64,000 bases of DNA from Ascidiella aspersa (lineage: Eukaryota). Below the pieces are notes generated by a model. That model did not search any database and was not told the DNA's origin. It worked only from the letters and a program-made list of their open reading frames with translations. Shown here in pieces: positions 3,216 to 63,980 of this stretch; the first letter of the stretch is position 1, and every line of letters starts with the position of its first letter. Location of the stretch: assembly GCA_963924565.1 (NCBI GenBank), contig OZ004613.1, positions 6,386,001-6,450,000 on the forward strand. The letters run 5' to 3'. The position numbers and the translations under genes were made by a program.

Positions 3216-4843
3216 AAGTTGAGAGTTGTGTTTTGTTCATCACTTCTAGCTTAGTTTCAGACTAAAGTGCAACCGAATTCTAATTTCCTTCAAATTATTT
3301 ATTTCGTTCCCCGGTGGAAATTTATTACTGAGCAAAATCTATACAATGCTTACAATTAATGATTTTTTTGTTAAGAGGAAATTTTATGTGTATCCAAGGA
3401 AACATTTAACAGTTATTGAAATGTAAAGAAGAGTAAAGGATTTGGGTTTTAATCCACATTTTGAATTAACTTTCTTCAACCTATATTGACATGATTCACA
3501 TTACAGCCAACCATTGTTTAACTTCCATTTATTCTGGCGAAAAAATCTAACAGACAAATCAAATAGAGGACGTTTACAGCACGAATAAAATTAAAATACA
3601 GCCTGTTCAATGTTTATTAATCGAAAACATTCTATTCACACTTGATTTGTTCTAAACATGAAACACGGCCAACCATTAATATCTGTCAAATTGTAATAAG
3701 TTTGATGTTGACTCAATTCATGTTTAATTGCGCTGGTTTTAAAAGGTTTGAAACGTTGAAAATTGACTTTAGATGAGTTTTTTTTTTATTTACACATTCT
3801 TACAAGGAAGTGATGTCATTTTGTAAAATGCCAGTACCGCGACTTTTATATGGTGCACACTTAACAAAATAAACGTGTCGTGCAAACCAAGTGGCTTTGA
3901 ACAAGCATCGAAACTACACGGCAAGGCAACATGTAAGATCCATAATACTATCAGTTATATAACTGGTGGTTTGCACTTAAGTCTTGTATGCTTGCCGGCA
4001 TTCAAGTTTGAAATACGAATGTGTTAGTTTCAAAATTACGAAAACTGCACGCCACCCTTCAGAATTACTCGAGGCCAACAATTTTAGAAGCACCACTTAA
4101 AGCAAGGTGATTGAAACCACGGCACGCGGACCACTTATGGCACGGCGCAACATCGTTATCTGTTAACGATTGTTTAATTGAGTGATACAAAAGCTTATTA
4201 TTGATACTTTCGTTTCACATAGCATTCTTGGTAGAGTGTTCGCGTACTAATCATATCAAGAACATATCAAAAACCAGAAAAGCTAATACAGTTCGATAAA
4301 TTAAAGGAACAAATAAGTATGAAATCTGGAGCCTGCTGTGTATGGCCGCAAAAAAACGCAAATAACTTGTGGCCACCAGATTCTGACATTCTTTTGCCAC
4401 CCTGATTAAAGGGATGGGTAGATGAAGTAAAACACAAGTAACAGTCCATTATTGCCAGGTTACTGAACAATTGTTACCTCCCAGTTATATACGAAAAAAT
4501 AAGTTATGAGCCGTCTAGATTATCTTGCTTGTGTTCGTGTATTGTTCGGTTGTTAGAAGCGCAGACGAACTGTTTAAAAATGATGGAAAATAAACCCTGA
4601 TGCTACTGCTGAAAGAAAATACGAAAAGGCAGAAGTATTTAAAGGAATCGATCGCCTTTAGTGGTGCGTTTGCATAAAACACAACTTTGTCCTTTCTCTT
4701 CTGTAGCCAACTTGAAGTTATTTTTTTTCTTTATGGTCGAAATTGCTTGGCGTTCCTTCTGTTGATATAAGCCTTGGTTTACGCTTGCAAGTCAGCACAA
4801 AACTCTTTTCTCGTTGTTAGATCCTAATTTCGACTTCTGCTCC

Positions 4844-4891
4844 TCATAGCAGAAGGCATCTCTGGCGTCTGCGCCTTCTCCGGCCTGAACG
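4844..4891 (-). CDS. NLR-A terminal exon encoding polybasic + CLLL prenylation motif
   Basis: gttttgtgttacag|CGT TCA GGC CGG AGA AGG CGC AGA CGC CAG AGA TGC CTT CTG CTA TGA. It is phase 0 like the preceding LRR exon. The paralog copy differs by a synonymous CGT>CGA. Confidence 0.8.
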   Translation of the reverse strand, partial: RSGRRRRRRQRCLLL

Positions 4892-7800
4892 CTGTAACAC
4901 AAAACAAACGCAATAAAATACTTTGTGTGAGTACATTCCAATCAACTTATTCAAGTGCTGCGGAGTCGGTTTAGAACAACCAGTGTCCACCTTGGCCTTG
5001 TTTTGCAAGCACCACCACTATGGGCGAATACACGAGTTCAGAAGCTATAAAAAAATGTAAAATGATGTTCGAGATATTGTTTCCCTGCAAATTGTTTTTG
5101 AATTTGTAGAATCTATTTGAATAAGGAAACTGAAGATGCCACTTGGCGAAATATATTTTCCTTATAAACAAACGTCTGATCCTGTTTTTACTCATGTTTT
5201 TAACTATGAGTTTTACTTGTAAATATACGCGTCAGCGGAGCAGTGATCTATGGCTAAAACCTGCCGCCGATGGTTTTGGTTTCTATAAAGATACACCCTA
5301 ATTATACATATTCTTACAATGTGAGTCTTACCTTGCGCAGAGAATCCACATCAGCTTCATCGATGCCGCATCCTTCTAACCCCAGCTCTTGTACATTGTG
5401 GGCACAAGTTCGGAGGAAAGCGAGTCCTTGCGACCCTAACTTGTTGCGGTTCAGGTTCAAATTCCTCATCTACATAAGCACAACATAATGTTAGACACAA
5501 GCACGTGGTTGGCTGCATAAAGGTTCTAGCAAATTGAACAATGCATATTCGCAACTTACACCACAAAATGTGCTATTCTTAATAGTTAAGGTAACAACTT
5601 TGGGATATATAATATCTATTGGGGCCATGGTGGACGAAATAACTTAATGGGACATTTGTTAACTATAGCAACTGAAAAATGATGGAATGCCTTGTGATTG
5701 GATATTTTGTTATTTTTCTTTAAATACACAATTTGCGTAAAGTTAACATGCGTTTAAAATAAACTAGACCCCTGGTCATTAATACCAGCTACGCGTTTTC
5801 TACACCCTCTCAATTATTTCTGCATAAGTTTTATAAAACACGTGGCCATGGCGCTCCCAAACCTTATTTTTTCCTATTGTATCTATGGAAAAGCAAAAAT
5901 ATTTCGCAATACGCGCCAATTTAACTTATGTTTCTAGTATGTCTTACCCAACTTGAAAACCGGTTTATCCATGGGAGCCGTGTGTCTTACCGCACCCTCG
6001 AAAATTAAAGTTTGGGAACCTAAACTATTTAAAAGTATTTTTTCACGCTAGTGCTTTTCCTTCTTAAAAAACTAGTCACGTTTAGACGTAACGCTATATC
6101 CGTGATTTGGCGTAACATTGTGACATTATACCTGCAATTTTTTAACCCCCCTCAAACAAAAATCTCGCATTTGCCCCTGATAGTAGTAATTATTTAATAA
6201 TGGTGAAATAAAAATTCCATTTACGGAAATATCTTTTGTACACCAGACTGGGGTTCAGCTACCAAATTTTACACGCAATGCTACTGCGTAGTTTATCCAC
6301 CTCAATGTTATATCAATATTCAACAAACCCTTCATTCCACAACATACTTACAGGTCGATCCATTCGTGATATGGCGTCAGTTAGGGGTTTTAGATTGGAA
6401 CCAGCGATCTCGCAATCCCATAATTCCAGCTGGTTGATGTTGTGTACACTTGTTGCCAGGCAACTCAAACCACGTGAATCCATCTTGTTGCCACTTAGGT
6501 TAATTTTTTCCAACTGTTACAATAAAGAAGGTTAAATGGTAAATTTGCCTACTATATAAACTCACACAACATCTACGAATATAGAACCGGTGACTCGAAC
6601 AACATTAATTTAATATTATTTAGCTGAGCAAGGATTGACCATCACCTATAATGCACATTAAAAGGAGTATTTTTGAATTATTAACTCTAGATGAAAAATT
6701 AAATTTCAGAATCCTTAACTTAACTGAAACTAAGGTTGAAGAGATAATCAATATTTCGCTTTATCCAACTTATGTTGTTAAATATATTCGGCTTAACTTT
6801 CGCATAAATAACCATCTAGATTTTCTGCTTTATTTTACAAAGCAAGACGTTTAAAATTCCAAATCCACAAACTCAAAACTTGTTGTGCACAGCGTAATTG
6901 TACAAGGAAGATGAGTTTAAACCACGCCTGAACAACTTAAAATTGTGCAAGGGCCACAACAAGCAAAAAAAACATTTCGCAGTCCGCATACTGAAGTTGC
7001 ATAATAGGTCAGGTAACAACTACTTAAAATCGCAAAGACTCGCTTTTCTCCAAACAATAGGTCAGGTATAACTCTAGGATATTTAATATCTATTGGGGCA
7101 ATGGCGGACAAAATAGTTTTATGGAATATTTTGGTTAACTATGGCATCTCAACATTATTAAATATTTTATTATTTTTAGTAAATCAACTAAAATAGGCCA
7201 GACCCCAGGTCTTTACTTTCGTGTACGCGTTTTTAGAAGAACCACAGTTTAAATATTTCTATATAAGCTTGGCAAAATCACACAAATAAAATGAGGAAAG
7301 AACCCGGGCGTTCGTATTTTAACCTAAACTCCCCTGCTTAAATTTATTGGTATTTTTTTATTGACTTGGCGACAGACGAAGCTATGCGAAATGAAGTGGC
7401 ATTAAATCAAATTGCAAAAGTATGAGTGAACGTAGGCGCTTTTCGGGTTGCAATTACTTCAACAGGAAAATGTTGGTACAAAGTAGTAATTGCAATTCAA
7501 GTGTTGGTTGGTAAATTGCTCTCATAACTAGTAAACACAAACATAAAGGATGTCTAGTTAATAACGGTCCATTGAGAAGAAGTGCTATCAGAATAAAATA
7601 CTCAGACCACGGTTATTTTAGACTCTAGCTAGAAACTATAGGGGTGGATCCATAGGAGACGTATTTTTGCCTATTGTAACAACGTGAATGCAAAACATTC
7701 CGCATTACCCGTGAATCTAAGTTATATTTCTAGTATGTCTTATAGTTCACTTGAAAACCGGGTTATCCATGGGCGCCGCGCGTCTTATCGCACCCTCGAA

Positions 7801-10800
7801 AACGGAAGTGTGGGAAACCTAAACTATTTAAAAGTATTTTTTCACGCTGCCTGCGAGTGTTTTTTGCCTTTATGATATAAAACATGGTCACGTGTTGACG
7901 TAATGCTATGTCCGTTACTTGCGACGTCACGATTTGACGTAACATTGTGACATCATGTCAATATTTTCATGCGTCCTCAAACAAAAGTCCACATTTGCCG
8001 CTGCCAGGAATTACTTAGTAATGGTGACATAAAAATTCCGTTTACGGAAAATTGTTTTGTACACCAGACAGTGATTTAGTTACCAAATCTTACACGCAAT
8101 GCTGCTGACGGTTTATCCACCTCCATATCATTTCAATATTCAGCACATCCTTCATTTCAACAACACACACTTACAGGTCGATCCAATAGTGATATGGCGT
8201 CAGTTAGAGGTTGGAGATCGGAACCAGCGATATCACAACCCTCCAATACCAGCTGGTTGAGGTTGTGTACACTTGTTGCCAGGCAACTCAAACCACGTAA
8301 ATCCATCTTGTTGCCACTAATGTTCAGTTGCTCCAGCTTTTGCAAAAAACGGTTAAACGGTTAAATAAACGGTTAAAGATTTGCCTAGGCTACTCTATAA
8401 ACTCGCACAACATCTACGAACATAGAACCGTACTAATTTAATAATATTTGACTGTGCAAGGATTGACCATCGCCTATAATGCACATTATAAGGAGTATTT
8501 TTGAATTATTAACTGTAGATAAAAAAATAAATTTCAGAATCCTTAAGTTAACTGAATTAAGGTTGAAGCAGTAAATTATTTTCAAATTATAAGAGCCAAT
8601 CAATATTTCGCTTTAATCAACTTATGTTGTTAAATATTCGGCCTAAATTTCGCATATATACCCATCTAGCTTTTCTGTTTTTTTAACCAAGCAACACGTT
8701 TAAAATTCCAAATCCACCAATTCAAAACTCGATGTGCTCAGAGTAATTGTACAAGGAAGATGAGTTTAAACCACGCCTGCACAACTTAAAATGGTACATT
8801 TGCAGGTCGATTCATTTGTGAAATGGCGTCAGTTAGAGGTTTTAGATCGGAACCAGCGATTTCGCAATACGTTAATTACAGATGGTTGATGTCGTGTACA
8901 CTTGTTGCCAGACAACTCAAACCACGTGAATCCAGCATGTTATTATAAAGTTGCAATAATTTAATCTATAGTGACAAGAAGTTTTTATTGTTCCGTATCC
9001 CGCCGATATGAGCGTTCATAACATCCAAGGTGCTGTCTGCTAATCCTGGACCATAAGTGCCTGCAAAGGGGAGCATTTCCCGCCCAAACATCTGGAATAC
9101 TATGGGATAAACAAGAAACTGCTGTGTCTTTAACGCAAAATTATTTTTTCCGTGTAGAATGCGTGGCTACCCCCCCTCCACAAACTGTAAGTAATTGCCT
9201 TATTTTCTCAATACTGCATATTATTTTCTTTTATAACAGGTAGGCTACTGAAATTAGTCAGCATTCATTGTTTCACATAAGTCAAGTTATATGCCTAAAA
9301 TCAAGTCACTACCCAATATTATTAATAATAATGCGTCTATCGTATGGTCTGTGGGAATTAACAACGGTGTCAAAATCCAATACATTCTTATTTGTCTTCT
9401 AACACACGATTGAACAGAACACCAAGAAATTGGTGGAAATAAGCCCCATTGTGACTAACTGAGCGAGCAAAATAGTTTAAATATTTCTTCCAAGTAAATG
9501 TCCCATGTGCTTGCCCCAGGTGGCCAACCCCTCTTTGGCTAACATTTTCGAGTGTTTGTTTGCAGACGGTTTTAAACATCTATCAATATGCACAAGTATT
9601 TTAGAACAGTTAGAATTTTAAACCAAACAAAACAAGAGAGGGTAATTTTGTGAAAACAAGTGCCGACTTTATGCTTCAAAGACGTTGTTTAAGTGAAACA
9701 CCACCGTCCAGCCATGCAACTTTTTATGAAAGTATGTAATTTGGGAGTTGTATGGAAGCGTGTATTATATTCTCACTGATGTATTTAGGATAAACCTACA
9801 TGTCTTGGTATGTTTAATAAAAATGGTCCGTAAAAAAAATTTTTTGCCCCCATCCCCCTAATATATGCAGACTCTCATGCATGTGCGGTTAATGCTAACG
9901 TATTTACTTATCACAACTAGCATAAACATACAGGATGGTTTCTGCATGAGATGGCGTCAGTTAGAGGTTGCAGATTTAACCCAGAAGTGTCGCAATCTGG
10001 CAACTTCAGCTTGTTGATGTTGCTTGCACTTGTTGCCAGGCAACGCAACTCACGTGACCCCAAATTGTCCACGAATAATTCTTCCATCTACACAAAACAT
10101 AGTTTGGTTTGTTAACGGAAGTTTACTGATACTTACTGATAAAACTTATTTAAACAGCTAAATACCGACTGAGGTAAAATTGATTGTAAACCGGAAAACG
10201 TGGTAAAAGTTAAATTTAGATTCTACACGATAAATATTTGCGCGACCACGCTCAATTGCTGTAAAGAGACAAATACATCAAACGTACACCACACGTGATT
10301 CATTATTGATATACCGGGTGACTAAATTTACCGAAACATTTCATAATTCAGTTAAGCAATTTTACAAAATTTGATTTTTCAGATGTTTGAACCGCGTTTG
10401 AATATAGTATTATGTAACGGAATGTGAAATCTGCATAAAACGTAGCCTAACAAGTGCATTTCCAAAAATGTCGTTTTTATTCAGTTGAATTTACAAGTAA
10501 TTGTGCATGCATCTTTCATGGCTTCGTAAACTTTCTGGACTCAAATCAGTCATATTTGCTGAAAGATGGAGAAACCAAATAATTTTTTTAATGAAACTAA
10601 CTTGAAAGTCAATAGACTTAACAATTAGGCGAATTATAATGGCGACAATGACAAAACCATGTAAATGTCAATTGTTACACGTAAGAACTTACAGGTATTT
10701 CTCTACGTGCGATTGCTTCAGTTAGAACCTCGAAATCTGGCAAATCGCTCGTCTTATAACGTTTTATTTCAACCGGTAACTAATTTAGTCGTTCTAAAAG

Positions 10801-13800
10801 TCAAAATGCCATTTATGCACTTAAAACTATTTCTACTAAACTTTCCAATTACATTTTAAAACTCAAACTGTGGTTTATTGAACTTGACATTCTCTTGCTT
10901 CTATGGTGTTTCATTTGAAAATTTTCTTTTTTATTTGCACGTTAACTAATCCCTCATTTAACACGAAACTCGCGTTAAACGTTTCCAGTTAGTATCATCA
11001 ACGAAATATTAAAATCTGGACAATATACCAAAAAACTTATCTACTTGCTAAAAAAATATAAAAGTGGGATGAAACGTTTAACGCTTTAGGGGAGACTGTG
11101 ACTACGGAGAGGTCGGGGGTGGCGGTCCTGCGTTGTATAACATCCCAAACTAATGTTTATTATTAAAATGAAAAACGGCAAGTAACATCGTTACATTAAT
11201 GACCATTATGACATAACCATGTCAATTGTTGTAGGTTAACTTACAGGTGTTTCTCTGCGTGTGATTGCTTCAGTAAGAACTTCGAAACCGGACAGGTCGT
11301 TCGTTTTGTTTAACCACAGGCGGTTTATCTTATGAACGCAGGTGGACAAAACTTTGAAGTCACGTGATCCAGTTGTCCTCACACGTATAAACTCTATCTA
11401 CAAAATAACACCAAGATATGTTGGTGGGTGCGCTGTCCCAGATAGATGAGGTTATCAAACTTATGCGCCGATCAGTTTGCCTCGCCCACCATTGTTGGTT
11501 ACCTTTAGTCTTCTTCTTCTTTTCGTGTGTCAAAAGAAATGCGGGTCAATATGACGTTTTATTTCAAACTGTAATTAATTTAATCGTTTCTAAACGTAAA
11601 ATGCCATATTATTTATGCGCTTAAAACAGTTTTACTAAAACTCCTAGTTACTAAGTTGTAGAGTACGCAAACTTTGCTTTTTTATTTGTACAGTAATTAT
11701 TCCCTCATTAAACACGATACTCGCGTTAAACGGTTAAGTTAGTATCATTAAATATTAGAATATGTATAATTTAGGCGAGCAATGGCGGTCTGTTTATTTT
11801 TGAAGTGGGGTAACAACGTCCTTTATACATCTTTACATCACTCCATGAAAGATTCGTGTGTACGGTCTAGCGACTTGTGTACAATCAATGCTGGGTGAAC
11901 AAACAGAAAGAAAACAGTCTATTTACGTAACAAAATGGTGCCACCATGTGGCGCTATGGTTAAAAGTATCTTTTTAGAGAAAAATGTTGTGTGGCTTTAA
12001 AAAGGCTGCTTTGTTGCCTTTAATTTTTTAATAGTGTATACAAATTTAAACGACAGGCAATCGTAAAACTTCACTAACCTTTTGTTTGGTTTTTGCCATT
12101 GTCTCCATCAACATTTCTAAACCGTTGCCGGTAAATTTGACTGGGCTGTAAAGTTCCCCGATGTCGATGACCAACTCCCTTTGTGTTGCTCGAAGCACTT
12201 GACAGAGACTGGACACTTCACTGGAAAGGATCGTTGCACCCTTTATACGAAGCTCTCCAGCGAGGAAATCGGCCACTTTTGTGGTGATTTCTTCATCGTT
12301 TGATTCCTGCGCCAAACTGCAAAGCTTAAATAAATTGGAGTTGAAGCTCTCCTCATCGTCTAATAAAAGTTGAGGTCCAAGCAAATCAATCAGACCTTTC
12401 AGCAAACGTTTTTTGCTGTCAACATCGGTGGAAGAGATTTTAAAAATTGGCTTTAGCTTACGATGGAGTTCCGTGTTTAGCAACCCGAAAAGAAACCGAA
12501 GAACCATTTCCCAAGTATTACTTTCCATGCTTTGCAGCAGACCAGAAAATGTGGACAGGTCAGTATCGAACAACAGCTTGAGTGATGCAAAAAACTCTTG
12601 CCAAAGAAGATGTAGGAAGAAGAATATTTTTTCCCCTTCCAGTATACGAAGGTTGAGGTCGCTGGAAAAAACTTGCATGTTGAGAAAGTCCTCCATTCCT
12701 TCAGCATCAAGTCCGACTTCATCAAAGTCGTCTTCGTCGAATGTGATCTTGTCATTGAGCATTCCGTGTAATGCCAGGTCAGAAAGTTTGCGCAAAATTC
12801 TGGGGTGTTCCTTAAACTTAGGCGAGTGAATGCAATCGGACACAAAAGCCGCAAACACATCTGTGAGCGTAAAAGTGCCATCTAAAGTGCCATGTTTTAG
12901 GATGTAAGGTGCGACGGTTTTGGCAAATATAGGAAGAAAGCACAAGGCCTTTGCATGTGGGTTTTGACTAAGTGACTTGGTGACCTTCTCGTAATCTTCT
13001 TTCTCTGGGCAAATTTGTCGGAAATACAAATCTTGAGAGCTTTCGTTGAAGCCGATTACCTTGACTACAAAGTGGGGCTTGCAATTAGGATGTAGCTTAA
13101 GAAAAGCTCCCGGTCGTGAAGTAAGCAGCTTGTGAGCATTAGCAAGAATATCGCCACGGAGTATGTTTTGCAGAATGACAACCGGCGTTGCGCGATCGTA
13201 CAATCCGATCACTGGAGCATCCATGTCAAGATCTTTGAACCTAGGTTCGTCCAAACCATCCAGGAAGATAAACAGCTTGTTGGATTTGGAAAGTCTTTCC
13301 AGTATTTGATCATCTATTTCCTTTGTGTGTTTCCAGTTTGGGTCGGATGACAGCAATTCCAAAACGCCTATTTTTTTATTAAGATCCAAGGTCTTCAAGT
13401 ATTTAAAAAGCCAATATCCCTTATCATCTGCAGGTAATTCATCTACAAGCTCCGTTAGTGTCTGTATAATAGCTGTAGTTTTTCCAATTCCAGCTATTCC
13501 AGTCATACCGACCACGTTGCCATGCCTCTTGACGTAATCGTCAGTTGCTGCTTTATTTCTAAATTTCTTACTTTTGGCTTCATCGATTGCTTCTTGTTTT
13601 GCAGCAGTAAATAGTTGGTTAAGTTTAAGCATGTTTGAGTTGACCTGGTTGCCTCTGAGTCGTTTCAACCCTTTTAAACCAAACTCCTCCAATGGTGCTT
13701 GCGAATCCCGAACGACGTCAAGAGGAACTGGGTTGCTTGGCAGAGTTCCGATGACCTTGTCAGCTGCTTCCTGAGACTTTTCTTGCCATGACGCTACTGA

Positions 13801-22560: not shown

Positions 22561-25500
22561 TTATAGTTTGTTCAAATTTGCCAAATCCGCAACAGACCTC
22601 CGAACCTCCTTTGTTGTCCCCTGAGGTGATCTTTGCGTTGACCTTTGTGGTGACCTCTGCGCTGAACTCTCTGTTAATTCCTGTTAAAGCAAAGAAACGC
22701 ACTTGTTTAAAAAATGTTATTGTAAGAATTTGAATGAAGTTTTCACTCTGTCTTTACCAAAACAGATCCCACGTTAATTTTGATATTATTTGCCGATACT
22801 ACTAGGATTTATTGTGTTCACACAACATATAGTATGTAATAAGAAGCATGTGTTGCTACTTTTACGTTGAAATGTTCTTACATGATCTGTCCCATCGTCC
22901 AATTCTTGTTCAGTGTATGTTTCTTGGCTTTGACTTGCTTCTGGTTCCAGTTTTGATTTCGCTTTATCGGAGGCTTCCTTTTCTTGACATAACTGTGAAA
23001 GCAGATTTGTTAAGACGTGAATTTGTTCTTTAACGGGACGTACACGTGGAAACTGTAAAACACAATCTGTGTTCTGTTAAAGTACTTAATCAAACTACTT
23101 AAGAGTTACTCTTGGCGACAAAAATGCAGGACTGCGCAAAAATGTTGTGATTACCTCGATACATTAACTACTCGTATTGTTTGTTTGGTCGGTTGTCTAT
23201 AAAAGCAAAACTTGCTAGAGCGGATATACGCGTATCTGTGTAACAACATTAGGCGTCACTCAGACTAAAAGATAAGTTATTACATTTAAAGTTAGAACAT
23301 GCGTCTATTTAAAACGCAGTAGCCACTATTTAAAAATGCAATAACGCCCGGGTCAAGCCAGGTTGTTTCGTTCTGAACCCGAAGCTTTGTGTTTAGCTTT
23401 TCCTGTTTTAAGTTCTGCTTCTAAGTTCAGTTGGGCCTGGACAGATCCAAGCAAACTTGATCTCAGCGAGAAACAAGCGAATGCATTCGATCGCCAGACC
23501 TCCAAGCGCCTTACTTCACAACTTATTCCACTGAACGTCAATAACTACCATCATTATTCCGCAAATATCGACAGGTTTTTTTAACTAATGTTCGGAACGC
23601 ATCATGACGTCACACGTCTAAACACTGACGTCACTAGTGTCGCATCGTTGTCCCGACAACATATCCTTATGTTATGAGTGCCTACCTTGAGCAGAGAATC
23701 TACATCATTATAATCGATGTCGCAATTATCCAATTCCAGCTCTTGTACATTGTGGGCACAAGTTTGGAGGAAAGCATGTCCTTGCGATCCCAACTCGTTG
23801 TAGCGAAGGTCCAACTTCATCATCTACATAAGCACAACATAATGTAAGATACAAGCAGGTGTTTGGCTGCATACAGGAAGCAGCAAATTGAACAATCCAT
23901 ATTCGCAACTTACACCAAAAAACTGCTATTCGTAATAGGTCAGGAAAAAATGGCCATATCGCCCCCCCCCTAGATCCGCCCCTGCCTGCCGTGAGATTTC
24001 CAACTAATGACCTCGGCCATACCGGGACAGTCACTCTAGCAACTGAGCTATGCAAGATCTAAATACAAACAAAAAGGATGTCCAGTTAATGATGGTTCAT
24101 TGAGAAGAAGTACTATCACAATAAATGCACCCAGGCCAGGGCCATTTAAAGGCCAGTAATCAGGGCCAGAGGGGTCAGTAATCAGGGGTGGTTTATGGGA
24201 GAGGGCACGTGGACATGGCTCCACTTAAAATGTATTTATCCTATTGAAACAAAGCGAATGCAAAAATATTTCGCAATACCCGCGAATCCAAGTTATGTTT
24301 CATTATGTCTTAGCTCACTTTAAAACCGGTTTATCCATGGGCGCCGTGCGTTTTATCGCACCCTCTAAAAATAAAGTTTTGGAAACTTAAACTTTACAAA
24401 GGCATGATTTTACGCTGCACGCAAGTGCTTTTTCGTCTTCATAATGTAAAAAGTAGTCACGTTTTGACGTAACGCTATGTCCATTACTTGTGACGTCACG
24501 ATTTGACGTAGCATTGTGACATCATACCTGCAATTTTTTCATGCGTCCGCAAAAAAAACAAAAAAAAACGCCCCTGCCAGTAATTACTTAGTAATGGTGA
24601 CACAAAAAATTCCGTAACGGAAAAATCTTTTGTACACCAGACAGGTGGTTCAGTTACCAAATTTAACACACTATGCTGTTTTATGTTTATCCAACTCAAT
24701 GTCATTCCAATGTTCAACACATCCTTTATTCCAACAACACACACTTACAGGTCGATCCATTCGTGAAATGGCGTCAGTTAGAGGTTGCAGATCGGAATCA
24801 GCGATTTCGCAATTCCATAATTGCAGCTGGTTGATGTTATGCACACTTGTTGCCAGGCAACTCAAACCACGTAAATCCAGATTGCTCTGATACAGTTCCA
24901 ACAATTCCATCTACAATGACAAGAAGATCCAATTGTTACGCATTCTTATTTGTCTTCTAACAAACGTTTGCATAGAAAAATCGAGATATTGGTGTAAATA
25001 AGCCTAATTGTGAACACTGAGCGCGCAAAATAGTTTGTATCCAACTATAACAATCAGTTTTTTGAACGTTTGTGGTTTACAGATTGCTTCCAAGTAAATG
25101 TCCCATGTGCTTGTCCCAGGTCTCCAAACCCTTGAAGCGTATCTTTTTATTATATGTGTTACGCGACATGCTACACGCGACACGCCTATTCTATCGTGCT
25201 AGTGCCGAGCGGTCATTCGCTCGATCATTCGAAAATACAAGCTGACGTGTGCACTGCTCTGGCTCCTACACCCTCTTTGGCTGACGTTTTTGAGTGTTTG
25301 TTTGCAGACCTTTTTAAACATCTATCAATATGCAAAAGGCTGTTAGCACAGTTGGAATTATTAACGAGACAAAACCAGAGAGGGTAATTTTGTGAAAACA
25401 AGTGCCGACTTTATTTTTAAAGATGGTTTTAAGTGAAACACAACCTCCAGCCATGCAACTTTTCATAAAAGTATGTAATTGGCAAGTTGTTTGGAAGCGT

Positions 25501-44831: not shown

Positions 44832-47800
44832 TCATAGCAGAAGGCATCTCTGGCGTCTGCGCCTTCTCCGGCCTGATCGCTGTAACACAAAACAAACGCA
44901 ATAAAATACTTTGTGTGAGTACATTCCAATCAACTTATTCAAGTGCTGCGGAGTCGGTTTAGAACAACCAGTGTCCACCTTGGCCTTGTTTTGCAAGCAC
45001 CACCACTATGGGCGAATACACGAGTTCAGAAGCTATAAAAAAATGTAAAATGATGTTCGAGATATTGTTTCCCTGCAAATTGTTTTTGAATTTGTAGAAT
45101 CTATTTGAATAAGGAAACTGAAGATGCCACTTGGCGAAATATATTTTCCTTATAAACAAACGTCTGATCCTGTTTTTACTCATGTTTTTAACTATGAGTT
45201 TTACTTGTAAATATACGCGTCAGCGGAGCAGTGATCTATGGCTAAAACCTGCCGCCGATGGTTTTGGTTTCTATAAAGATACACCCTAATTATACATATT
45301 CTTACAATGTGAGTCTTACCTTGCGCAGAGAATCCACATCAGCTTCATCGATGCCGCATCCTTCTAACCCCAGCTCTTGTACATTGTGGGCACAAGTTCG
45401 GAGGAAAGCGAGTCCTTGCGACCCTAACTTGTTGCGGTTCAGGTTCAAATTCCTCATCTACATAAGCACAACATAATGTTAGACACAAGCACGTGGTTGG
45501 CTGCATAAAGGTTCTAGCAAATTGAACAATGCATATTCGCAACTTACACCACAAAATGTGCTATTCTTAATAGTTAAGGTAACAACTTTGGGATATATAA
45601 TATCTATTGGGGCCATGGTGGACGAAATAACTTAATGGGACATTTGTTAACTATAGCAACTGAAAAATGATTGAATGCCTTGTGATTGGATATTTTGTTA
45701 TTTTTCTTTAAATACACAATTTGCGTAAAGTTAACATGCGTTTAAAATAAACTAGACCCCTGGTCATTAATTCCAGCTACGCGTTTTCTACACCCTCTCA
45801 ATTATTTCTGCATAAGTTTTATAAAACACGTGGCCATGGCGCTCCCAAACCTTATTTTTTCCTATTGTATCTATGGAAAAGCAAAAATATTTCGCAATAC
45901 GCGCCAATTTAACTTATGTTTCTAGTATGTCTTACCCAACTTGAAAACCGGTTTATCCATGGGAGCCGTGTGTCTTACCGCACCCTCGAAAATTAAAGTT
46001 TGGGAACCTAAACTATTTAAAAGTATTTTTTCACGCTAGTGCTTTTCCTTCTTAAAAAACTAGTCACGTTTAGACGTAACGCTATATCCGTGATTTGGCG
46101 TAACATTGTGACATTATACCTGCAATTTTTTAACCCCCCTCAAACAAAAATCTCGCATTTGCCCCTGATAGTAGTAATTATTTAATAATGGTGAAATAAA
46201 AATTCCATTTACGGAAATAGCTTTTGTACACCAGACTGGGGTTCAGCTACCAAAGTTTACACGCAATGCTACTGCGTAGTTTATCCACCTCAATGTTATA
46301 TCAATATTCAACAAACCCTTCATTCCACAACATACTTACAGGTCGATCCATTCGTGATATGGCGTCAGTTAGGGGTTTTAGATTGGAACCAGCGATCTCG
46401 CAATCCCATAATTCCAGCTGGTTGATGTTGTGTACACTTGTTGCCAGGCAACTCAAACCACGTGAATCCATCTTGTTGCCACTTAGGTTAATTTTTTCCA
46501 ACTGTTACAATAAAGAAGGTTAAATGGTAAATTTGCCTACTATATAAACTCACACAACATCTACGAATATAGAACCGGTGACTCGAACAACATTAATTTA
46601 ATATTATTTAGCTGAGCAAGGATTGACCATCACCTATAATGCACATTAAAAGGAGTATTTTTGAATTATTAACTCTAGATGAAAAATTAAATTTCAGAAT
46701 CCTTAACTTAACTGAAACTAAGGTTGAAGAGATAATCAATATTTCGCTTTATCCAACTTATGTTGTTAAATATATTCGGCTTAACTTTCGCATATAACCA
46801 TCTAGATTTTCTGCTTTATTTTACAAAGCAAGACGTTTAAAATTCCAAATCCACAAACTCAAAACTTGTTGTGCACAGCGTAATTGTACAAGGAAGATGA
46901 GTTTAAACCACGCCTGAACAACTTAAAATTGTGCAAGGGCCACAACAAGCAAAAAAAACATTTCGCAGTCCGCATACTGAAGTTGCATAATAGGTCAGGT
47001 AACAACTACTTAAAATCGCAAAGACTCGCTTTTCTCCAAACAATAGGTCAGGTATAACTCTAGGATATTTAATATCTATTGGGGCAATGGCGGACAAAAT
47101 AGTTTTATGGAATATTTTGGTTAACTATGGCATCTCAACATTATTAAATATTTTATTATTTTTATTAAATCAACTAAAATAGACCAGACCCCAGGTCTTT
47201 ACTTTCGTGTACGCGTTTTTAGAAGAACCACAGTTTAAATATTTCTATATAAGCTTGGCAAAATCACACAAATAAAATGAGGAAAGAACCCGGGCGTTCG
47301 TATTTTAACCTAAACTCCCCTGCTTAAATTTATTGGTATTTTTTTATTGACTTGGCGACAGACGAAGCTATGCGAAATGAAGTGGCATTAAATCAAATTG
47401 CAAAAGTATGAGTGAACGTAGGCGCTTTTCGGGTTGCAATTACTTCAACAGGAAAATGTTGTTACAAAGTAGTAATTGCAATTCAAGTGTTGGTTGGTAA
47501 ATTGCTCTCATAACTAGTAAACACAAACATAAAGGATGTCTAGTTAATAACGGTCCATTGAGAAGAAGTGCTATCAGAATAAAATACTCAGACCACGGTT
47601 ATTTTAGACTCTAGCTAGAAACTATAGGGGTGGATCCATAGGAGACGTATTTTTGCCTATTGTAACAACGTGAATGCAAAACATTCCGCATAACCCGTGA
47701 ATCTAAGTTATATTTCTAGTATGTCTTATAGTTCACTTGAAAACCGGGTTATCCATGGGCGCCGCGCGTCTTATCGCACCCTCGAAAACGGAAGTGTGGG

Positions 47801-62113: not shown

Positions 62114-63980
62114 TTATAGTTGTTCAAAGAATTTTGCCAAATCCGCAACAGACCTCCGATCCCCCTTTGTTGACCCTTGAGCTGACCACTGGGGTGACCT
62201 TTGCGTTGACCCCTGGGGTGACCTTTGCGTTGACCCCTGAGGTGACCTTTGCGTTGACCCCTGAGGTGACCTTTGCGTTGACCCCTGGGGTGACCTTTGC
62301 GTTGACCCCTGAGGTGACCTTTGCGTTGACCCCTGGGGTGACCTTTGCGTTGACCCCTGAGGTGACCTTTGCGTTGACCCCTGAGGTGACCTTTGCGTTG
62401 ACCACTGGGGTGACCTTTGCGTTGACCCCTGGGGTGACCTTTGCGTTGACCCCTGAGGTGACCTTTGCGTTGACCCCTGGGGTGACCTTTGCGTTGACCC
62501 CTGAGGTGACCTTTGCGTTGACCCCTGGGGTGACCTTTGCGTTGACCCCTGAGGTGACCTTTGCGTTGACCCCTGAGGTGACCTTTGCGTTGACCCCTGA
62601 GGTGACCTTTGCGTTGACCCCTGAGGTGACCTTTGCGTTGAGCCCTGTGTTGACCTTTGCGTTGAACTCTAAAGTAAAGAAACGCACTAATTTGAAAATG
62701 TTATTGTAAGGATTGGAATAAAGTTTTCACTCTGTATTTAGCAAAACAGATCCCAAGTTAATTTTGATATTACTTGCAGACACTATAGAGTTTCTTGTGT
62801 TCACACAACATTTGGTATGTCTAGTAAGAACTATGTATTACTACTTTAACGTTGAAATAATCTTACATGATCCGTCCCATAGTTCATATCTTGTTCAGTG
62901 TATTTTTCGTGACTTTGACTTGCTTCTGGTTCCGGGTTTGATTTTGCTTTATCGGAGGATTGCTTTTCTTGATATAACTGTGGAGACAGATTAGTTAAAG
63001 ACGTGAATTTGTTCAATGGGACGTACAAGTGAATACTGTTAAACACAATCTGTGTTCTGTTAAAGTGCTTAATCAAACTACCAGAGTTACTTTTGGCGAC
63101 AAAAATGCAGGACATGGGAATGCGCAAAAGGTTGTGATTACCTAGGTACATTGAGTACACGTATTGTTCGTTTGGTCGGTTATCTGTAAAAGCAAAACTT
63201 ATTATAGCGGATATACGCGTATCTGTATAGCAACATTAGGCGTCAGCCAGACTAAAGAAAATATCACATTCAAGATTAGAACAAGCGCCAATCTGAAACG
63301 CAACTGCCACTATATAAACATGCATTAAATGGCATTATACAAGTAAAGACATAATGATAATTAACCGATTACTTGTGAATTCGTTATTGCGCAACTCGCT
63401 CTACTCGTTACTCGCCAGAGTCAAGCCAGGTTGTTTCGTTTTTAACTCGAAGTTTTGTTTTTAGCTTTTCCTGCTTTGAGTTTAAGCCAAGTTGTTTTGC
63501 TCTGACCCAAAACTTTTTAGTTCTGCCTCTTTTAGGTCAGTTGAGCCTGAACATATTTGAACAAACTTGATCTCAGCGAGAAACAAGCGAATGCATTCGA
63601 TCGCAAAAATGTCAGACCTCCAAGCGCCTTACTTCAAATCTTATTCGCGTGAACGCCACTAACTGCAATCAAGCTGTGGCTGATTATTTCGTTGATATAG
63701 AAATGCTTATTTAACTAAACTTGTACAATTTGATGCAACGGGAGCATCATTACGTCACCCGTCGAAACACTGGCGTCACTAGTGTCGCTATGTTGCTCCC
63801 GCATATATTGTTACGTTTTGGGTTATGTTTATAGGTGCCTACCTTGCGTAGAGAAACCACATCATTATAATTAAGTGAGACGTCGTACAACTCCAGCTCT
63901 TGTACATTGTGGGCACAAGTTCGGAGGAAAGCGAGTCCTTGCGATCCAAAAGTTTTGCCCATTAGGTTCAACTTCCTCAA
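62114..63980 (-). CDS. NLR-B' (B-type paralog), last three exons; the 5' part lies beyond the window
   Basis: LRR exon 63843-63980 (LRKLNLMGKTFGSQGLAFLRTCAHNVQELELYDVSL...SLRK|GTAGGC), tail exon 62867-62977 (LYQEKQSSDK...YGTDH|GTAAGA) and terminal exon 62114-62668 (S(STQRSPQG)~20...RRSVADLAKFFEQL*). Confidence 0.75.
62186..62665 (-). repeat. 24-bp coding minisatellite, 20 units (TCAACGCAAAGGTCACCYCAGGGG)
   Basis: Read directly. Only ~1.5 degenerate units are present at the homologous site 22610-22665. Confidence 0.97.

Follow-up and report, generated by a model that had tools for sequence, protein, structure and literature searches.

It is proposed, with a probability of roughly 0.6, that the receptor gene NLR-A of the ascidian Ascidiella aspersa belongs to a lineage-specific ascidian subfamily of NACHT-LRR proteins which would be prenyl-anchored through a very short last coding exon, which adds a polybasic stretch of 7-9 Arg/Lys followed by a CaaX box. 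The signal is kept in 13 of 20 sister genes, therefore these receptors are probably lipid-anchored to membranes. The gene is located in a window of 64 kb, which is the whole stretch of DNA analysed here. The position of an NLR in the cell is central to its sensing and signalling. CaaX anchoring is a known targeting principle, and judging from the predicted tail it would appear here in a protein class where it is undescribed. The sequence-only reading, made earlier from the letters of the window, knew of no characterised animal NLR with a C-terminal prenyl anchor, and full-text literature searches returned no NLR described with a CaaX anchor.

Gene organisation

NLR-A is a NACHT-LRR (STAND NTPase) receptor with a NACHT domain, a winged helix and C-terminal LRRs. 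The NACHT exon matches Pfam NACHT (3.8e-13; 50.1 bits, cut-off 26.7) as well as NOD2_WH (1.4e-10), together with NLRC4_HD2 slightly below its cut-off (5e-7, 30.7 bits). Five phase-0 LRR exons exhibit an LxLxxNxL-type pattern; scanned one by one, they gave weak LRR_6/LRR_1 matches below the cut-off (E ~0.01), all Pfam and LRR evidence for this gene being that of single exons. The introns following the NACHT exon are all of phase 0 and the LRR exons are all symmetric. The closest proteins are ascidian NLRs (Clavelina, Ciona, Phallusia) with 31-40% identity. Between two intact LRR exons of the gene, at 8790-8965 (-), lies a degenerate LRR pseudo-exon which is interrupted in frame (...INHL, then stop), and an additional LRR fragment is placed at ~10680-10760.

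The window comprises a tandem duplication in which NLR-A (2018-23344) and NLR-A' (42029-63328) are ~98% identical and a more divergent gene, NLR-B, lies between them. The coordinates of the features are collected in Table 1.

Table 1. Exons and neighbouring features of NLR-A and of its tandem duplicate NLR-A' (window positions)
Feature	Position	Strand	Remarks and basis
Terminal coding segment, NLR-A	4844..4891	(-)	15 codons, RSGRRRRRRQRCLLL, then TGA; translation, 20 paralogous copies
Putative 3' UTR, prolonging the terminal exon	4441..4843	(-)	extent inferred from paralog conservation
Last intron, NLR-A	4892..5331	(-)	440 nt, gtaaga...ttacag; splice signals, paralog comparison
Last LRR exon, NLR-A	5332..5469	(-)	46 codons, ...DVDSLRK; phase-0 acceptor and donor; weak LRR_1/LRR_6
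LRR exon, NLR-A	6352..6513	(-)	54 codons, phase 0/0
LRR exon, NLR-A	8175..8336	(-)	54 codons, phase 0/0
LRR exon, NLR-A	9932..10087	(-)	52 codons, phase 0/0
First LRR exon, NLR-A	11245..11397	(-)	51 codons, phase 0/0
NACHT-WH-HD2 exon, NLR-A	12079..13796	(-)	572-codon ORF; Pfam domains
Terminal exon, tandem duplicate NLR-A'	44832..44879	(-)	peptide same as in NLR-A
Last LRR exon, NLR-A'	45320..45457	(-)	identical to that of NLR-A

The terminal exon

A 48-nt, phase-0 terminal exon with a polybasic stretch and CLLL had been described in the sequence-only reading, and its translation, its acceptor and the in-phase donor at 5332 were all confirmed. The acceptor, tgttttgtgttacag/CG at 4892/4891, is strong and directly precedes the exon, and the last LRR exon carries the donor CGCAAG/gtaaga after 5332, giving a predicted junction 5332>4891 of phase 0. 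A search of sequencing runs returned one non-RNA data set, made up of DNA unitigs in which no joint is seen. Between A and A' the exon differs solely at 4889, where CGT stands against CGA, both coding for Arg, so that the single change is indeed synonymous, as had been stated. The tail ends in CLLL followed by TGA, with the Cys four residues from the C-terminus, two aliphatic residues and Leu at X. By these residues it would qualify as a GGTase-I-type CaaX substrate; the rule invoked earlier, that a CaaX box with X = Leu is directed to GGTase-I, is found in the literature (PMC8357416).

The probability of meeting such a motif by chance was evaluated with first-order Markov randomisations of the 64-kb window in six frames, counting a loose CaaX followed by a stop with at least five Lys/Arg in the preceding 12 residues. 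About 0.75 such motifs are expected per randomised window. In the real window, CaaX ends with eight basic residues occur in A and A' only.

No canonical AATAAA was found within 700 nt downstream of the tail exon. Upstream, a near-invariant block, GTT[T/C]TAAACC[G/C]ACT[C/T]CGCAG, is located at 4956-4979 (-), which is -88..-65 from the tail acceptor in all 20 paralogs; it lies unusually far from the acceptor and may represent a remote branch point or some other element of splicing. The CCGCAG of this block (~4956, ~65 nt upstream) was also tried as an acceptor and rejected: it extends the frame in A, and in the paralogs it either fails to keep the phase or runs into a stop.

The tail-exon family

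The genome holds exactly 20 copies of the tail exon, 19 on contig C7 and one on contig C6, a count on which one DNA search and two pattern searches were concordant. In 19 of them the last LRR exon has a homologue upstream, and its phase-0 donor is conserved. The remaining copy, L030 (C7:3783800-3793799), carries an intact ...QRCQRCLLL and stop with no LRR exon within 9 kb upstream, and is either an orphan exon or the end of a very long last intron.

The polybasic CaaX is kept in 13 of the 20 copies, 11 with CLLL and two with CLLQ. Six copies (A, A', the C6 copy and three others) end in ...QRCLLL or ...QKCLLL. Five copies have an in-frame 9-nt insert and end in ...QRCQRCLLL (four) or ...QRRQRCLLL (one), with an additional in-frame 3-nt deletion in one of the five, and two end in ...QRCLLQ. 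The remaining seven tails are broken, being cut short to RSARKRRRRQ and a stop (four) or to a single R and a stop (three), and all seven also have Cys changed to Tyr. The paralogs thus form a series from CLLL through CLLQ and an extra upstream Cys to a polybasic end only (...RRRRQ) and to none.

In a tree built from the flanking DNA with the exon masked, the C6 copy, whose tail reads QSARRRRRRQKCLLL and stop, is the outgroup, and the A/A' branch comes next. Since this outgroup has an intact CaaX, the CaaX tail is ancestral, and since all seven broken copies, with their nonsense change and Cys>Tyr, fall into a single derived clade, it was lost once. About 38 close NLR paralogs, NLR-B among them, are devoid of the tail exon; together with the seven copies that lost the motif, they indicate that NLR function as such does not require the tail.

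The genome yielded at least 292 NACHT candidates. Some 58 located on the chromosome of the window have an identity of 77% or more, nearly all with an open NACHT exon. Contig C7 at 0.3-6.6 Mb accommodates a very large NLR expansion, where two of 74 scored NACHT candidates have an in-frame stop; the genes there vary in the number of LRR exons and have repeat units of ~2.2 kb. A genome-wide search for an Arg-rich C-[L/F]3 end followed by a stop returned this NLR family and matches at chance level.

Constraint and alternative explanations

Conservation among the paralogs amounts to 0.55-0.75 in the intron, rises sharply to 0.87-0.94 where the acceptor is reached and remains ~0.8-0.9 over the next ~450 nt, as expected of a terminal exon with its UTR. 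Among the 13 intact copies, variation affects 9 of 48 sites of the CDS against 73 of 207 in the adjacent intron and UTR (Fisher p = 0.018), a comparison of 15 codons in non-independent paralogs (tandem array, possible gene conversion) which is therefore supportive and not conclusive, as are the further figures on constraint given below. In the broken clade the CDS is no less variable than its flanks, and rather more so (OR 1.4). The CaaX box and stop of the intact copies vary at 1 of 15 bases, CTA>CAA, a change of L to Q that again yields a CaaX (p = 0.013). Five of 10 variable sites in the intact copies are synonymous in the tail frame (CGG/CGA, AGG/CGG, CGC/CGT/CGG, CGT/CGA, TGC/TGT) versus 1/10 and 2/10 in the other two frames, where one change also creates a stop. 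The five replacements are conservative with regard to the motif: Q/R, A/G, K/R, L>Q at X, and C>R in the duplicated insert. Both the 9-nt and the 3-nt indel are in frame, and TGA is invariant in 20/20 copies. It can be said that the tail exon is probably real, coding and terminal, and that constraint probably acts on its polybasic CaaX in 13 of the 20 members of the family.

A different account holds that the 48-nt frame does not occur in mature NLR-A mRNA, that the last LRR donor is instead read through (...SLRK-VRLTL and stop) or the end lies elsewhere, and that the motif persists since the duplications are recent. The whole block of ~280-900 nt around the exon is indeed conserved as DNA, UTR included, which together with the nonsense changes in seven copies and the missing canonical poly(A) signal speaks for this account. 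It is nevertheless regarded as unlikely, because donor and acceptor are kept in all copies, the CDS is less variable than the flanks in intact copies only, indels respect the frame, the stop does not vary, and the motif outlived the divergence of the C6 copy, which has 83% identity in its NACHT exon. The read-through end was rejected, as the resulting tails are not conserved across the paralogs: V and stop, VRLTL and stop, or variants of 14-40 residues with frameshifts.

If the exon is translated, it might act mainly via its Arg run, directing the protein to the nucleus or nucleolus, binding membranes electrostatically or binding nucleic acids, with the CaaX unmodified or secondary. Runs rich in Arg classically serve as signals for the nucleus or nucleolus, and the polybasic part alone is kept in the four paralogs ending in RSARKRRRRQ; nonetheless, such a role seems rather improbable given that variation within the intact copies is lowest at Cys, both Leu and the stop, that the sole change at X, L>Q, restores a CaaX, and that a C-terminal CLLL is a canonical GGTase-I substrate. 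Moreover, Cys became Tyr in every copy of the broken clade after the nonsense change, which is expected if this residue mattered only while it was translated. The use of a second acceptor 7 nt downstream (ttcag/GCC, exon from 4884), opening another frame (AGEGADARDAFCYEEQKSK...), is scarcely credible and was rejected: although that frame has no premature stop and is open in 20/20 copies, 9 of 10 variable sites are non-synonymous in it, past the TGA the replacements are radical (E>R), the stop of this frame is unconserved (TGA to TTA in A, A' and the outgroup), and three paralogs have lost the acceptor (cag>aag). The upstream AG, not this one, comes first after the pyrimidine tract. The sequence-only reading had also raised, as speculation, a Rho-tail mimic or decoy for pathogen enzymes, such as YopT-type proteases, which cleave prenylated tails. 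In a fuller form of this idea the geranylgeranylated polybasic tail would be an integrated mimic of Rho/Rac C-termini, and pathogen cysteine proteases of the YopT/AvrPphB type, which cut or modify such tails, would release or alter the NLR and trigger it. No evidence in support of this idea was found; it is unsupported speculation and very improbable. If true, it would provide an animal counterpart of the integrated decoys of plant NLRs, and the series of CLLL, CLLQ, double-Cys and tail-less paralogs would represent bait diversification.

Other 3' ends in the family

The last intron, short in NLR-A, measures 2.1-4.2 kb in the other 17 paralogs with a last LRR exon. When these long introns were checked for hidden coding exons, one candidate alone was found, an 87-nt exon E between the last LRR exon and the tail, which occurs in at least 14 tail-bearing paralogs (L022, L024-L027, L029, L031-L035, L039, L040, L042) and reads LYQE(K/R)QAEPEASQSQ.TYTEQDLDDETDH. 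It has a conserved cag/ acceptor and /gtaaga donor, in-frame indels and phases 0/0, hence the frame of the tail remains the same with E included. Exon E is acidic (EPEASQSQ...DDETDH), ranges from 87 to 111 nt in size, and is also found in the window at 22882-22992 and 62867-62977 (-). Because it precedes the tail in most paralogs, most members would end in LRR, acidic linker and polybasic CaaX. A and A' are without exon E; the paralog comparison indicates that it is lost in both, and that the predicted direct LRR-to-tail junction of A is a derived arrangement.

NLR-B has another end: its last LRR exon is followed by exon E (22992..22882) and by an exon of Ser/Thr/Gln/Pro repeats with a stop (22680..22561), all of phase 0, and by no tail exon. 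The repeat exon, built of STQRSPQG units, has ~1.5 copies at 22561-22680 (-) versus ~20 copies at 62129-62668 (-). Being of phase 0 after E and having a terminal stop, it looks like an alternative C-terminal exon of B-type NLRs and not a 5' exon of A. Two TGACGTCA palindromes (CRE-like) are placed right after the last LRR donor, at ~23600-23640 (-) and, in many paralogs, within the initial ~90 nt of the last intron; this stretch is open for ~27 codons in 11/19 paralogs and frameshifted in others.

Predicted membrane anchoring

According to the prenyl-anchor reading, GGTase-I would geranylgeranylate the Cys of CLLL, and in the two CLLQ paralogs the Cys would be farnesylated instead. The last three residues would be cut off and the Cys then methylated. 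The lipid and the neighbouring positive charge would hold the LRR end on negatively charged cytosolic leaflets, most likely those of the plasma membrane, leaving the NACHT and N-terminal signalling parts exposed to the cytosol. The combination of a prenyl group and a polybasic stretch, to which the sequence-only reading had appealed, is an accepted plasma-membrane signal (PMC11392533). The genome encodes the prenyltransferase beta-subunit type at three loci (PF00432, above cut-off) and ICMT (PF04140) at one locus. As the paralogs differ in their tails, tail variation may diversify where the family members sit.

If the anchor is real, it would constitute a third route to membrane-resident NLRs, with an irreversible CaaX-plus-polybasic code at the LRR end. 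One gene cluster would then offer an allelic series for testing the effect of anchoring, with members that have a geranylgeranyl or farnesyl tail, an extra Cys, charge only or no tail, and the prenylated innate sensors (OAS1 p46, ZAP-L, GBPs) would gain an NLR class.

A scan of NLR C-termini for CaaX ends, proposed along with the initial observation, yielded a single genuine case among 206 homologues, in Clavelina lepadiformis; two others are ends of single-exon ORF calls, and one CaaX among the 84 long homologues is weakly above chance. The Clavelina protein, an NLR isoform X2 annotated by NCBI (XP_076802100.1), ends in ...NICRCCLLQ. Its tail comes from an alternative 69-codon terminal exon (L044:26734-26943, OX392440.1) with acidic SSSIDDEEPI repeats before the NICRCCLLQ end, and the longer isoform X1 skips this exon. 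Like most tail-bearing paralogs described here, it has an acidic stretch before the CaaX end, a Ser-rich linker in Clavelina and exon E in Ascidiella. It is unlike NLR-A in its NACHT region (32% identical), its two extra Cys and the lack of a polybasic run. No homology between the two tails was detected, and a search with the Clavelina tail returned the query alone. CaaX-tailed NLRs may, on these sequences, exist in more than one ascidian lineage and be wider in tunicates.

Comparison with known prenylated and membrane-bound proteins

CLLL is the CaaX box of Rac1. The tail of NLR-A had been called Rac1-like, which is right for CLLL; it is, however, Arg-rich rather than Lys-rich, and no relation to Rac1 beyond CLLL was demonstrated. 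The hypervariable tails of Rac1 and K-Ras4B share with NLR-A a basic run immediately before the CaaX, from which targeting to the inner plasma-membrane leaflet by prenyl group and charge would be expected (two-signal principle, PMC11392533), but in NLR-A this arrangement is found on a NACHT-LRR receptor and not on a small GTPase. A search for a Rac-type tail with a Lys-rich CaaL pattern gave one match in the genome, at chance level (C4:31554239, KKKRKKKCQLL and stop), where the DNA is A-rich and transposon-like and has no exon of a GTPase up to 1.5 kb away.

Among innate sensors, OAS1 p46 resembles NLR-A in having a CaaX ending in Leu (CTIL) that originates from an alternative 3' end; it has been shown experimentally to be geranylgeranylated, targeted to membranes and dependent on this for its activity (PMC8357416). 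It differs from NLR-A in protein family, in the lack of a polybasic run and in being directed to endomembranes; its prenylation is proven by experiment, that of NLR-A is predicted. ZAP-L and GBP2/5 are further prenylated innate immune effectors with a C-terminal CaaX, and GBP1 is, similarly to NLR-A, a cytosolic immune protein with a C-terminal CaaX and an adjacent polybasic patch. In contrast to NLR-A, GBPs are dynamin-like GTPases and ZAP-L is a zinc-finger protein, neither being a STAND/NLR protein.

Closest in protein class are NLRP3 and NOD1/NOD2, which are NLRs relying on lipid-mediated membrane association, as would be the case for NLR-A. NLRP3 has a lipidated Cys in addition to a polybasic region, and the known lipidation of NLRs is S-acylation (PMC12224916, PMC11392533); an artificial fusion of the NLRP3 polybasic region with CVIM goes to the plasma membrane (PMC11392533). 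In NLRP3, NOD1 and NOD2 the modification is a reversible S-acylation of an internal Cys near the N-terminal linker, whereas for NLR-A an irreversible prenylation is proposed, at the extreme C-terminus after the LRR.
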